A stretch of DNA of 64,000 bases from the NCBI GenBank assembly GCA_965112155.1, contig OZ218103.1; one strand, 5' to 3'. Positions 1,579 to 7,103 of this stretch are shown in pieces. How positions within the stretch are numbered: the stretch's first letter is position 1; each line of letters starts with the position of its first letter. Source of the stretch: Podarcis liolepis. Lineage: Eukaryota. Position numbers and translations under genes: made by a program. The notes beneath the pieces were generated by a model that was given only the letters and a program-made list of their open reading frames with translations, searched no databases and had not been told where the DNA came from.

Positions 1579-2516
1579 ATGGTCTCAGTAAATCATAGCA
1601 AACTGGTGTCTGCTTCAAGTCAGCTGACTGCTTCAGCTCCCATTCAGTTAGCCAACGCTTCAGTTGCTCTCAAGCATGAGATGCCACCGTTGAATTTGCT
1701 GCAGGATTGCAGCGGAGAGCAGGCTTCTAACCCATCAGCTATCTCCAACTTAATCTGCACATCAGAGACGGGTGTTTCGCAGTCCAAGGTAAAGAAGGAT
1801 GGGGAGAAACCACAGACCACTATCTACGAAGCCTACCTCAGACTTCCTGATTTTTGCCCGGAACTCTCCAGGGACTTTAGCCCTACACTGGAGGAGATTG
1901 AGGAGTTCCTGAATGAGAAAATGGCAATTCTCAAAGATGAGCTGAATGACAAGCAGCAGGCAGGAGGACAGCTTAAGAAAAAGTCTGAGATCAGCTTGGG
2001 TAGCCCCGGGGAACAGTCTGTTCCTGTAGCTGTTCCGGATGAAGGCCTTTCCTGCTCTGCTCAGTCAGGAGTGGTGGTTTCTGGTGGTACAGGCATCCTA
2101 GGGACTGCAGGGACTGTCCCAGTTGTCCTTCAGATCCAGCCCAACCAAGCGAGTGAAGGCAACTCGCCAACCCAGAGCCCTGTTGGTGGTATTAGGGTGG
2201 CTCAGTTGGTCATCAGAATGCAAGGGCAGAGCCTGACTGTTCTTCCCCAGGTCATCCAAAGCCCTTCAACAGGCACAGAACAAAAATATGTACGGATAGC
2301 CCCTTTGCCTGTGACGCTGAGGCCTGGAGTTCTTGGAAGCGTGAAGAATGTGGAGGCCAAGGCCCCCAAAGCCTTCCCTCCTGTCATCCGAGTCCACAAG
2401 TGCACACATCCCGGTTGCACAAAGATGTACACTAAGAGTTCTCACCTCAAGGCACACTTCCGACGCCATACTGGAGAAAAGCCTTACACCTGTACTTGGC
2501 CCAACTGTGGCTGGAG
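1579..2516 (+). CDS. KLF15-like Kruppel-like factor, coding exon 1 (N-terminus, ZF1, first half of ZF2)
   Basis: ORF carries KLF15-type motifs [53 protein letters not shown] and [40 protein letters not shown]. Donor AG|GTAAGT after 2516 (phase 2). Likely acceptor ttcctgcag| at 1482 gives a 96-nt 5' UTR segment with an in-frame TAA, so 1579 is the start. Confidence 0.9.
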
Positions 2517-3139
2517 GTAAGTGTGTGGCAATAAAAAAACGGCCTGGTTATTTGATTATTTTTTTGAAAGTTGACAGTTGACTTCGTTGCTCAATGAAAG
2601 CTTTGTGGGATCAGATAGGCTCACTTACGGTAACTACTAGAATAAACTAGTACTTCCAGCCAACAGTGCAATCGTGTATATTTCTCAGGCACCAGTCTCA
2701 TTGTTTTCAGCGAGGCCTACTACCAAATCCTGTAGAAGTGTGTTTAGGACTGCAAGGTTATGTATTGGTTGAGAAATAATTTAAAATGTATTGCCTGAAC
2801 TGAAGTATACATGCGTCCTGGACACAACCCACTAGACATTTCTCTATAAGCTCTGCTGAAATGGATTGGAGCTGTTCAAGAACATTGGTGATGATCATTG
2901 GTGCTTTTTAATATTACCATCTGTGTCTTTTTTAAGGAAACAACTCCAATGAAAACAAACAAATCTCATATTTGGTCAACAGTGAATGAATCTTTCACTG
3001 ATGGGATTCAATTAGAAATTGTTATTTTTCCATCCCTGGTCAGATAATGATTGATACATACACAGCACTGTTGCCATATTTTATTCTTTTATTTCCTCAG
3101 CAAGGTTTCTGTTCCTCCTTTGACTGCCAGGCAGCGCAC

Positions 3140-3515
3140 AAATGATAATGCTAGGCTTCATTAGGAGAGGAATTGAAAATAAAACTGCCGATACCATAAT
3201 GCCGTTATACATATCTATGGTACAACTGCATTTGGAATACTGTTCCATATGGTTCTGGTGGCCTCTCCTTGAACAGGACATTGTAGAGCTGGTAAAGGTT
3301 CAGAAAAGGGCAACCAAAACTGGTCAAGGGGGCGGAGCAACTTATCTATGAGGAAAGGTTGCAGAATATGGAACCACAGAAAAAAAAGTGAGTAAAGGTG
3401 ATGTAATAGACATTCATAAAATGATGCATGTCGTGGAGAAAGTGGCTCGAGAAAAGTTTTTCTTCTTTTCTCCTAACACTGGAGCTTGTGGACCTCCAAT
3501 AAAACTGAATGTTGG
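3140..3515 (+). mobile_element. CR1 LINE 3' fragment
   Basis: Degenerate ORF2 tail LGFIRRGIENKTADTIMPLYISMVQLHLEYCSIWFW...VQKRATK. Confidence 0.85.
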
Positions 3516-4645
3516 CACTGAATGTTCGTGTGTTGCATTTTTGCTAATCTTGCAACTGTTCAAGGGCATAGGACCTCTTCCCTGATGGGAGAGAAAAATA
3601 AAAGGGTCCTTGCACTAGCCTCCCCATGCACTATAATTGTGCAACCCACCATTCTTTTTCAACAGCTTTGTGAATAATTTCACCTTAATCGTTCTGCATT
3701 TCCCAGAATTAATTCCATGAGTAGATTAGCTGCAGTTTACAGACTTCTGTGACCTGCTGGGGTGTAGCTGATAGTCCAGGTACAAGCTCAAGACAGTCAT
3801 GTGGCAAGGAGTTCCTTCTTTTAATAGGTTCCTTTTTTCTGATCCTTCCCATACATATGATGTACTGAAGTCGCAAAGTCTTCTGGGATTGCATTTGTGT
3901 CTGCCCATGCTGCCCCTTGTACCTTTTCCTCAAGCAGATGGTTTTGTTTAAAACTTAAAAGCCTCCAGCTGTCATGGCATTGGTGGCAGGGACTTTCCAA
4001 ATGTGGAGAGGCTGCTCCTAGGGAACCTGCAGCTGCCAGACTTTGCAGGGGCTTTGCAGCCATTGCTCAGGGCATCTTGTGACAAGAGGAGCTCAGTAAA
4101 ATATCGATATTGTTTCCAAAATACGGAGGGCATGTGCAGTTTCCAAGCTTACCAAACAGGGGAGAAGGGCAGGGACTGGAACAGGCCCCCAGGCAAGGGT
4201 TGCACATATTTGCTCCTGAAATCCCTGACAACATATAGGGTTGAATTTGCTGTTTCCTTGAGAATCATTCTCAAGGGGGTCCTGTGTGATCTTGGCTGAT
4301 CTGCTTCCTTCCAGCTTCTTTGGCTGTAATGACCTGAGACTTTGGAATGTATTCCTGCTTAACTGCAGAAAGTGAAGTCAGGGGGGCTTCTTTCTCCCCC
4401 TTGTAGCTCTGGTAAATGTATTAGGAATCTGTTTGATCTCTGCAGTGCTCTATAAAACCAAACTTCTCCGCTACATTAGATATGAGCTGCAAATGGAGGA
4501 GGAGTCAGTGAGCATAACAAGCTTCTGACTCCACATTCTTTTGTGGACATTATGGATGGGCCCATCTAATGACTCTACCATATGTCTGGGTCACTGAGAA
4601 TGCAGTTTTTAGTTCTTTGCTGCAGCATGTATGCGTCTCCTATAT

Positions 4646-4783
4646 CAGCGATGGGGAACCTGTGGCTCTGCATATGTTACTGGACTACAACTCCTAATAG
4701 GCTCAGCTACAATGGTGGATGGTAGGGATGATGGGAGTTGTAGTCCAGCAACATCTGGAGGGCTGTTATAGGTTAGCCACCCC
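4646..4783. repeat. Short hairpin MITE-like repeat (ggggaacctgtggc..ggactacaactccc / gggagttgtagtcc..ggagggc); further copies near 6447, 7415, 8100, 15590, 19600, 38950, 41160, 42590, 59277, 61020
   Basis: Internal inverted repeats recur in 10 or more degenerate copies across the window. Confidence 0.75.
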
Positions 4784-4799
4784 GGCATCTCCACCCCCA

Positions 4800-5090
4800 T
4801 TGTTCAGCCCAGGCACTGAGGTCCAGCTCTGAGGGCCTCCTGGCAGTTCCCTCACTGTGAGAAGTGAGGTTACAGTGAACCAGGCAGAGGGCCTTCTCGG
4901 TTGTGGCACCTGCCCTGTGAAATGCCCTCCCTTCAGATCTGAAGGCAGCCCTGTTTAGGGAAGTTTTTAATGTTTGATGTTTTATTGTGTTTTTAATATT
5001 CTGTTGGGAGCCACCCAGAGTGGCTGGGGAAACCCAGCCAGGTGGTTGGGGTATAAATAAATTATTATTTTATTTTATTTTTATTAAATA
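4800..5090 (+). mobile_element. L2-like LINE 3' end
   Basis: agggccttctcggttgtggcacctgccctgtgaaatgccctccc motif followed by ggggtataaataa and AT-rich tail. Confidence 0.7.
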
Positions 5091-6922
5091 AGTTTTCAGT
5101 AGCGCAGTGGGTTAGAGTAGATCTCATAACTGCCACTGAGTAGATTACCCAATATCATCCAGGGAATCTGAAAAAGCAGATGATCCAACTGGATTCCTTC
5201 TTTCTAGGGTTGGTGACTGTGAGATCTCCTTTGTAATTATATATTTGCCTTTACAAGGTGCAGAAAGTTATGAAAGGGCAGTGTACCAGTTGGGATTTCT
5301 GAACTGCTTTTAAAGGCTGCACATGTACTGGCATATTTGAAACATATAACCTGTATGCATATGTGCCCTGAAGATCTGTTGCCAATTGCCAAACTCAGTG
5401 GCATGCAGTCATGGGTGAGATGGAAACATACCATTTCAAATACAAGAATGTATGTTGTATGTACGTGTACAAAATCTTTAATATGTGACATATTCATTGA
5501 AAGCGTTTTATTCTGCTCTTCATCCAAAAAAGACTTCTAGAAAGAAAAGGGATTGGGAGAGAAGATGTGGGGGGGGGGGAATGGGATGATTTCAGGCACT
5601 ATTTCCTAGTTACAGATTTCTAATCATCCTTAGTCACGAGCTATTTCTCACGATCTGAAGTTGCAGGGGTTCTTGTCTGCCCATAAGTCTTTTTGAGATT
5701 AGAAAAAGAGACAAAGTTATTCCCTTACATTTCCCCACTCAATGGCACCACTTTGGTTCAATCAGGGCCCCTTGACAATTAAAAAAATAATAAAAAAATT
5801 GTCCAGGGTTGTTTCTGATGTGACTCTGAGTGGGTTGTCAGTGAGATCATGTCTGGTCTGTTCCTGAATTATTATGTAACATTGGACAAGTTGTGCTTCC
5901 TTCTTCGTCTTTGTTTTCCTCACTCCAAACAGAGAGACAGTATTTCACAGAAGCTTGATGACTTTGTTAATATTTGTCAAGGTCTTTGAGTTCCTTTGTT
6001 GGAAGGCACTCCTTGAACTTGTTTTAAGGCTTACTGCTCTTGTCGAAGGCTGATTTTCTTCTACATCATGTCAGCCTTGGTTCATACGTGAAAAGAAATG
6101 AAGGAACCAATAAGGGGTGGGAAGGAGAGAGACAGACAGAATGTCAGTGGTACACAAGAATAAAGGGTCAAGAATGGGCAATTAAACCTCTGTCTTTGTG
6201 CACCTTTGAGAGGTTATATTTTATTTATTATCACCTTTATATCCCAGCAAGGAGCTCAAGGTGACATACATAGTTCTCCCTGACCCCTGCCTGTCCTCAA
6301 AGCAACCTTGTGAGTTTGGTTAAGCTGAGGGACTGTGGCTGGCCCAAGCTCACCCAGTCAGCTTTATGACTGAATGGGAATTTTGAACCCTGGGCTCCCA
6401 AGTCCTAGTCATCTCACTCTACTACATTATCCTTTTCACCTGAGATGGTAAATCTGTGACCCTTCACAAGCTGTTGGGACTATAGCTGCCATCAACCTTG
6501 ATCATTGGCCATGCTGGCTGGGGCTGCTGGGAGTGGAAGATGAACAACATCTGAAGGACCATCAGGTTGTGCCATCCCTGCCCTGCCTGAACCCAAGAGT
6601 GGTTCATGACCTATAGTCCCAATGCACCAGAAGCCAATGAATTGCACCTGCCTGTTTCCAAGTGGCAAAGATTCATGTCTAGAGAAGCTGCTTTCTAGCA
6701 TCTTGCGGTTTCAAAATGTGAGTAGGGTCCATGTTTTCTATTTCTGAAATAGACACTATATTCTTGAGAGTCACACTAGAGCAGCATCTGCTAGACAAAT
6801 CTGCTTTATATCCCAGAATCCTCTCTTGTAGTTTGCTTTGACTGTGTGAGAAGCCATTTGGTGAGAACAACCTCCTTGGTTCACACAACTGTGCAGTAAA
6901 CATCTCTTCTTCTGTCTGGTAG

Positions 6923-7103
6923 GTTTTCCCGCTCGGATGAGCTCTCTCGCCACAAGCGCTCCCATTCTGGACTCAAGCCTTACCAGTGCCAAGTGTGTGA
7001 GAAGAAATTTGCCCGCAGTGACCACTTATCCAAACACATGAAGATCCACAAAGGGTCATTCAGTTTGGGAATCCAGACAGCTCAAGGTTGTGGTCATAGC
7101 TGA
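6923..7103 (+). CDS. KLF15-like factor, last coding exon (rest of ZF2, ZF3, stop)
   Basis: Acceptor tcttctgtctggtag| at 6922, phase matches. Translates (R)[59 protein letters not shown]. Not in the ORF track. Total protein 372 aa. Confidence 0.92.

Follow-up and report, generated by a model that had tools for sequence, protein, structure and literature searches.

The gene described here lies in a stretch of 64,000 nucleotides from the lizard Podarcis liolepis (contig OZ218103.1; the whole stretch is referred to as the window) and encodes a Krüppel-like factor (KLF) of the KLF15 class. The best explanation, to which we assign a probability of about 0.85, is that it is a functional and transcribed gene of a second KLF15 type, here termed type B or KLF15B. 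This type would be an ancient sister of KLF15 that arose by a duplication before cartilaginous and bony vertebrates split, with one of the two early vertebrate whole-genome duplications (2R) as the most likely source. Judged from its sequence, the window gene is not the orthologue of mammalian KLF15. Type B is retained in cartilaginous fishes, coelacanth, lungfish, amphibians, turtles, crocodilians, birds and squamates.

The original prediction described an intact two-exon open reading frame (ORF) of 372 amino acids (aa) with three C2H2 fingers directly upstream of ELK4. The reading frame, a GT..AG junction and Pfam bear out the gene itself, and coding exons of ELK4 in the same orientation were found 3' of it, at 20.3 and 22.9 kb. 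The 372-codon coding sequence occupies positions 1579-2516 and 6923-7103 of the + strand (counted by codon, with the split codon 2515/2516/6923 included). Pfam detected C2H2 fingers in both exons (for exon 2, zf-H2C2_2 at 5e-11 and zf-C2H2 at 7e-8). The three C-terminal fingers at residues 273-297, 303-327 and 333-355 show the spacing of the SP/KLF family (C-x4-C, C-x4-C and C-x2-C, with H-x3-H). Their residues C275/C280/H293/H297, C305/C310/H323/H327 and C335/C338/H351/H355 are invariant or nearly so across 78-85 KLF15-class proteins, and the same applies to four N-terminal islands at residues 102-111, 184-188 (LQIQP), 208-217 (AQLV..QGQ) and 238-242 (VRIAP). The third recognition helix reads RSDHLSKH. 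The second linker, HSGLKPY, is of the SG.KPY type, which is invariant in the KLF15 class. The protein thus carries the KLF15-type helices, the linker and the four islands which had been predicted, and the islands together with the linker place it in the KLF15 class.

An AlphaFold2 model of the Podarcis lilfordi orthologue P0001, based on an 85-sequence alignment, was mostly of low confidence (mean predicted local distance difference test score, pLDDT, of 55). The three fingers were modelled confidently and the bulk of the protein was predicted to be disordered. An amphipathic helix was predicted at residues 104-126 (pLDDT about 86), starting in the island at 102-111. Moreover, the islands at 181-188 and 208-224 were predicted, with weaker confidence, to form a small three-stranded beta meander (strands 182-189, 207-214 and 217-221, pLDDT 55-73).

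KLF15-class proteins fall into type A, the canonical form of about 400 aa with the start MVDHLL, and type B, the form of the window gene with about 370 aa and the start MVSV or MVSL. All mammalian sequences found are type A. The exons were searched separately. For full-length analyses the public orthologue P0001 stood in for the window protein; with 98% identity it was also the top match of exon 1. In the search with the exon-1 protein, the best 120 of 1012 relatives were listed, down to frogs at 232 bits. They comprise squamates, turtles, alligator, many bird orders, caecilians, salamanders, frogs, lungfish and coelacanth, with lengths of 365-390 aa. Type B proteins of sharks, rays and a chimaera were retrieved with the N-terminus of the coelacanth member, and the length across jawed vertebrates ranges from 365 to 402 aa. 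The coelacanth N-terminus also returned P0287, which starts with MVDHLL, ends in ..KVHRFPRNSRSVRS and shows the canonical mammalian-type pattern. When P0287 was used as the query, monotremes, marsupials, placentals and ray-finned fishes were obtained, together with the same non-mammalian species again.

Both types were found together in the 13 listed species pairs, and wherever contig records exist (Geotrypetes has none) they are located on separate contigs. In Podarcis lilfordi, type A is found on a 123-Mb contig (P0415/P0313) and type B on a 97-Mb contig (P0001); in the pigeon Columba, the respective contigs measure 21.7 Mb and 8.3 Mb. Further pairs, type A given before type B, come from the lungfish Protopterus (P0289, P0087), the coelacanth Latimeria (P0290, P0095), the sharks Heterodontus (P0343, P0268) and Heptranchias (P0338, P0269) and the chimaera Callorhinchus (P0350, P0277). 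Both types were also found in Pituophis, Pogona, Hemicordylus, Ambystoma, Microcaecilia and Geotrypetes. Cluster look-up gave canonical KLF15 in P. muralis (P0311), P. raffonei (P0314) and P. lilfordi (P0415/P0313), and Zootoca has a separate type A protein as well; the type B members identified by cluster look-up belong to P. raffonei, P. muralis, Lacerta agilis and Zootoca. Three Podarcis species therefore have both genes, and in these congeners, as in Zootoca, the type B gene is not the only KLF15-class gene of the genome. The clusters obtained from the ESM Atlas all bore the name 'Krueppel-like factor 15' and gave no useful taxa. The representative search with full-length P0001 yielded almost nothing useful, with poly-zinc-finger proteins dominating via summed finger scores.

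Profile scoring classed 260 of 260 KLF15-class hits without overlap, the smallest margin being 122 bits; the lizard query yielded type B in all 120 listed hits, and the canonical query type A in all of its 119 new ones. A maximum-likelihood tree of 85 rows and 409 columns was calculated under LG+C20+F+G4 with ultrafast bootstrap and SH-aLRT, without an outgroup and hence unrooted. The branch between A and B received support of 100/100, the split was kept in 200 of 200 bootstrap trees, and a quick tree agreed. Within each clan the order follows the species tree, with chimaera and sharks, coelacanth and lungfish, amphibians and amniotes. All mammals fall into A, where they are the sister group of sauropsid A. 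Exon 1 of the window gene does not group with mammalian KLF15: it belongs to B, where it is sister to P. lilfordi B inside the squamates. Because both clans hold cartilaginous as well as bony vertebrates, any rooting puts the duplication before crown jawed vertebrates. This places it before the split of chondrichthyans and osteichthyans, as expected for an ohnologue. A reptile-specific duplicate was considered and rejected; both clans span sharks to sauropsids. The sum of branches from the clan base to Podarcis is about 0.87 in B and about 0.26 in A, so that B evolved roughly three times faster.

Type B resembles canonical KLF15 in its identical three recognition helices, in the conservation of the whole finger domain, in the second linker SG(V/L)KPY and in N-terminal islands common to both types, including PV.LQIQP, AQL..QGQ..PQ and V.IAP.P. 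Nevertheless, overall identity between the types is only 33-38%. At a threshold of at least 80% conservation in both types, 110 alignment columns hold the same residue, whereas 10 are conserved with different residues and are therefore diagnostic. From canonical KLF15 to type B, these changes convert KMHKC to RVHKC, EKPF to EKPY, HRRSH to HKRSH and the tail HRFPR.. to H(K/R)G.., and the N-terminus starts with MVDHLL in canonical KLF15 and with MVSV in type B. A further difference concerns the N-terminal serine/acidic block SEDD..SCSSPDSQ..ESQDSILDYLLSQ of canonical KLF15, which is absent or decayed in tetrapod type B; its remnants are recognisable in type B of shark, coelacanth and lungfish. 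The window protein lacks the combination of MVDHLL start and this block that characterizes type A. Unlike canonical KLF15, the window gene adjoins ELK4. Its coding sequence is split inside finger 2, presumably at the same position as the intron of canonical KLF15.

Other KLF proteins share only the fingers. KLF5 (2ebt, 140 bits), KLF4 (2wbu and others, 122 bits) and KLF10 match the C-terminus of type B through their solved finger domains, which suggests the same mode of GC/CACCC-box recognition for type B. There is no likeness outside the fingers: these matches span only residues 262-359, and the KLF15-class islands are absent from these proteins. Additional genes annotated as klf15 outside mammals have likewise been described in teleosts, namely klf15a/klf15b and klf15l (PMC3820594, PMC12673963). 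The teleost pairs that we could place, from eel, arapaima and Scleropages, are type A duplicates and thus unlike the window gene. Arapaima (P0359/P0360), Scleropages (P0363/P0365) and eel (P0353/P0355) each have two canonical-type KLF15 genes that are duplicates inside A; those of arapaima and Scleropages fall into two corresponding clades, the pattern that the teleost genome duplication predicts.

Transcription and splicing were assessed by comparing four sequencing runs with positions 1280-7270 of the window. Two of them, X1 and X2, are contig sets of different studies which are presumed to be RNA; coverage restricted to exons and a spliced contig fit this origin. Contigs of both sets contain a joint 2514>6921 that skips 4406 bases with GT..AG ends (cut +2). 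It is equivalent to the 2516/6923 junction that the original prediction had put forward for checking. Exon depth was 52.9 in X1 and 9.1 in X2, and the intron was near zero outside two repeats. A third run, X23, consists of raw stranded RNA-seq reads, of which about 12% were sampled. Its reads are confined to exons, covering the bin 1480-1679 and leaving 1280-1479 without reads. The first mate always maps to the - strand; therefore, under the usual convention for stranded libraries, the transcript is from the + strand. Sequence differences between transcripts and window amount to about 1.6% of exon positions, and because of this divergence we assign the transcripts to a close relative or a divergent population.

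Compared with these transcripts, the ratio of replacement to silent substitution rates (dN/dS) is about 0.34 (10 replacements per 856 sites and 9 silent changes per 260 sites in X1; X2 gives the same ratio). None of the replacement changes relative to X1 or X2 falls into the fingers or the motif islands. The gene is under purifying selection, which is concentrated on the fingers and the four N-terminal islands. A spliced, transcribed gene with this ratio does not fit the picture of an unexpressed copy with a dN/dS near 1. The window protein is distinct from all three sequenced Podarcis proteins. Five residues are private to it, K134, L174, K261, F266 and Q364 (positions 1978-1980, 2098-2100, 2359-2361, 2374-2376 and 7074-7076). 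At these sites all other lacertid orthologues carry R, P, R, S/T and R, and the RNA contigs R, P, R, S and R. None of the five is located in a finger or a motif island.

We propose that an early vertebrate whole-genome duplication yielded KLF15 (type A) and its type B sister before the cartilaginous/bony split. Type B would then have stayed beside ELK4, being kept from sharks to birds and lizards and apparently dropped in mammals. Its product is probably a nuclear transcription factor acting on the same GC-rich/CACCC-type sites as KLF15, since it shares each of the three recognition helices and the SG.KPY linker with KLF15 without a change. The shared helix that begins in the island at 102-111 and the islands of the beta meander probably represent common cofactor or activation surfaces. 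Regulation and partners, in turn, probably differ from those of KLF15 by sub- or neofunctionalisation, because tetrapod type B has lost the serine/acidic block, has a different tail and evolves faster.

Different explanations for the origin and state of the gene have to be weighed against this proposal. A whole-genome duplication is the probable origin of the A/B pair. The ELK4 region (SLC41A1, CDK18, PLXNA2; human 1q32) and the KLF15 region (SLC41A3, ALDH1L1, PLXNA1; human 3q21) belong to one four-fold paralogy group, which is the expected signature of 2R. This argues against a small-scale duplication, segmental or tandem with subsequent dispersal, before the jawed-vertebrate ancestor, which would leave type B as no true 2R ohnologue. 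The genomic locations point in the same direction: canonical KLF15 of the chicken maps to chromosome 12 (PMC10177326), and the type B proteins of birds mostly derive from 7-9 Mb contigs (approximate sizes), which are much smaller than the pigeon contig with type A. Although the tree dates the event only as older than crown gnathostomes and ELK4 is the sole neighbour providing synteny evidence, both of which are compatible with a small-scale event, we consider such an event rather unlikely. It is highly improbable that the window gene is the KLF15 orthologue itself, moved to ELK4 in reptiles or away from it in mammals and then rapidly diverged. The NCBI label 'Krueppel-like factor 15' and the presence of all KLF15 hallmarks would agree with a moved orthologue. 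However, the same species carry a separate and much more mammal-like KLF15 in 13 pairs, on other contigs where recorded, and the fully supported A|B branch has sharks, coelacanth, lungfish, amphibians and sauropsids on both sides. Thus, the prediction of a second KLF15-class factor instead of a translocated orthologue is upheld by the type A genes of the congeners and by this branch.

We see equally little chance for a decaying or non-functional copy, be it a pseudogene, a retrocopy or an untranslated transcript, that merely looks intact. The threefold faster evolution of B towards Podarcis, the five private replacements in the window lineage and a protein mostly predicted to be disordered would be in line with decay. 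Full-length frames of 365-402 aa, however, have been kept since before sharks and bony vertebrates split, the finger residues and islands are invariant, and the dN/dS of about 0.34 comes without any replacement in these regions. Since the gene bears an intron which is spliced, it is not a retrocopy. Several points weigh against the 2R-derived, functional KLF15B gene that we favour. The RNA evidence stems from a close relative that is about 1.6% diverged, and for two of the runs RNA is a presumed origin. The evidence for canonical KLF15 comes from three Podarcis congeners and not from the assembly of the window itself. The tree is unrooted, so that the pre-gnathostome date rests on clan content and not on a root; this date is compatible with a whole-genome as well as with an older segmental duplication, and the paralogon argument is background knowledge. 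The absence from mammals and ray-finned fishes is negative evidence from lists of the best-matching annotated proteins, as genomes were not searched for relics. Finally, the teleost gene si:ch211-117k10.3, named 'klf15l', might be a type B gene.

Retention in this reptile and loss in mammals had also been predicted. The second part agrees with our searches of annotated proteins, in which no mammalian type B was present among the best 120 of 1012 relatives or among the matches of the coelacanth N-terminus. The former list extends to frog proteins scoring 232 bits, a depth at which a type B copy from a monotreme or marsupial would be expected to appear, provided that its divergence was ordinary. 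By this sequence evidence, type B was apparently lost in mammals. The first part needs to be widened, as retention is no special feature of the reptile and extends from sharks to birds. No ray-finned-fish type B was seen in the annotated protein lists either, which is a weaker negative than that for mammals. In this context, a study on pikeperch reported three klf15-annotated genes including si:ch211-117k10.3 ('klf15l', 421 aa) (PMC12673963). Galliformes were likewise absent from the type B matches listed. The chicken may lack type B, or its type B may rank below the listed matches. Genome-wide KLF surveys of the chicken described a single KLF15, located on chromosome 12 (PMC10177326, PMC11394431).

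Type B is annotated in more than 100 species, and every descriptively named match listed is called 'Krueppel-like factor 15', the others being unnamed or generic. Pei and Grishin mentioned only KLF15a/b of teleosts (PMC3820594). Full-text literature searches found no description of a second KLF15-class gene as a distinct family member. Type B is therefore already known as a gene model, and as a distinct member of the vertebrate KLF family it is new, or at least apparently unrecognised. Its recognition would add one member to the vertebrate KLF inventory and a further marker to the 1q32/3q21 paralogy group. Mammalian gene losses of this kind are common, and the finding is a useful correction, not a surprise of principle.

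Much research has been devoted to KLF15 as a regulator of fasting metabolism and circadian output and of muscle, heart and kidney; nearly all of it concerns mammals, which apparently have just one of the two ancient sister genes. We give even odds to a broader view in which type B is a 2R ohnologue of KLF15 hidden by a shared name, with the same DNA specificity and different regulatory regions, so that in non-mammals two factors share the 'KLF15' programme or compete for it, and mammals reduced it to a single factor. If this is true, it would apply to the fasting, amino-acid, lipid and circadian parts of the programme, and published non-mammalian 'KLF15' expression data may mix both genes. Recognising type B would resolve a trap of orthology and naming for RNA-seq, quantitative PCR and knock-down in chicken, Xenopus, lizards and sharks. 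Moreover, the same fingers, different effector regions and the apparent loss in mammals amount to a natural experiment for dissecting which parts of KLF15 carry which functions.

The features of the KLF gene and of ELK4 are compiled in the table. The start codon at 1579 has the context aaccaATGg, the GTAAGT donor begins at 2517, and the TGA stop at 7101-7103 leaves a tail of 17 residues after finger 3. A candidate acceptor AG is located at 1513-1514, upstream of the leader seen in the contigs, and no CpG island was found in the 1.5 kb upstream of the gene. Since the contigs start only at 1528-1532, downstream of this AG, and the upstream 1.5 kb is free of a CpG island, a non-coding first exon outside the window is conceivable. 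The short upstream ORF could dampen translation of the KLF gene. At the other end, the X1 contig extends about 744 bases past position 7270. An Rfam scan of window positions 1-9000 gave no match.

Table. Coordinates of the KLF15-class gene and of ELK4 in the window
Feature	Position	Strand	Details
5' untranslated leader	1528..1578	+	RNA-like contigs start at 1532 (X1) and 1528 (X2)
Short upstream ORF	1560..1598	+	12 codons plus stop; begins 19 nt before the main ATG, out of frame, overlapping
Coding exon 1	1579..2516	+	Codons 1-312 and two bases of codon 313; four motif islands, finger 1, half of finger 2
Island at residues 102-111	1882..1911	+	Invariant columns P102 to L111
Islands PVVLQIQP (181-188), AQLV..QGQ..PQ (208-224), VRIAP.P (238-244)	2119..2304	+	Alignment invariants
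Finger 1	2395-2469	+	Exon 1
Finger 2	2485 to 6965	+	Split by the intron
Intron	2517..6922	+	4406 bp, GT..AG ends, interrupts finger 2; spliced contigs in X1/X2
Coding exon 2	6923..7103	+	Last base of codon 313, codons 314-372, stop TGA 7101-7103; rest of finger 2, SGLKPY linker, finger 3
Finger 3	6981-7049	+	Exon 2
Start of 3' untranslated region	7104..7270	+	X1 contig (2077 nt) reaches 7270 at contig position 1333
ELK4 first coding exon, N-terminal ETS domain	20310..20516	+	Motif scan; best PDB match SAP-1/ELK-4 with 137 bits vs ELK-1 with 105
ELK4 second coding exon, end of ETS domain, B-box and beyond	22863..23891	+	ELK-4 chain 1hbx_G residues 71-157, E = 1.6e-37

Between the KLF gene and the ELK4 coding exons, positions 14001-15000 form the sole GC-rich kilobase of the first 24 kb (GC 0.60). 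This part is probably a CpG-island promoter or first exon region of ELK4 and no separate gene; the GC-rich open frame of 327 codons at 13573-14553 (-) had no Pfam or NCBIfam match. A GC-rich block at 21050-21790 in the ELK4 intron (GC 0.55), in which the open frames of both strands repeat motifs such as GGEKQACFSPPP, resembles a tandem or inverted repeat. Further downstream, a 165-codon open frame at 41731-42225 (+) containing LHWLLVEYRIRFKVLVLTFKAL had no Pfam or NCBIfam match and resembles the C-terminal end of reptile retrotransposon ORFs. An open frame at 62311-62607 (-) containing HFFVGFGALLSPLIADPFL looks like an exon of a major facilitator-type transporter. Pfam and NCBIfam gave no match for this frame, a mere candidate for MFSD4A, which it resembles and whose expected site, tail to tail with ELK4, it occupies.

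The intron of the KLF gene contains repeats at about 4680-5080 and 6480-6680, where the summed depth in the RNA-like contigs reaches up to about 29,000. Many joints between opposite strands connect positions around 4724-4735 with 6508-6513, so the two repeats are inverted copies of one abundant, transcribed element resembling a short interspersed element and containing gggagttgtagtcc.

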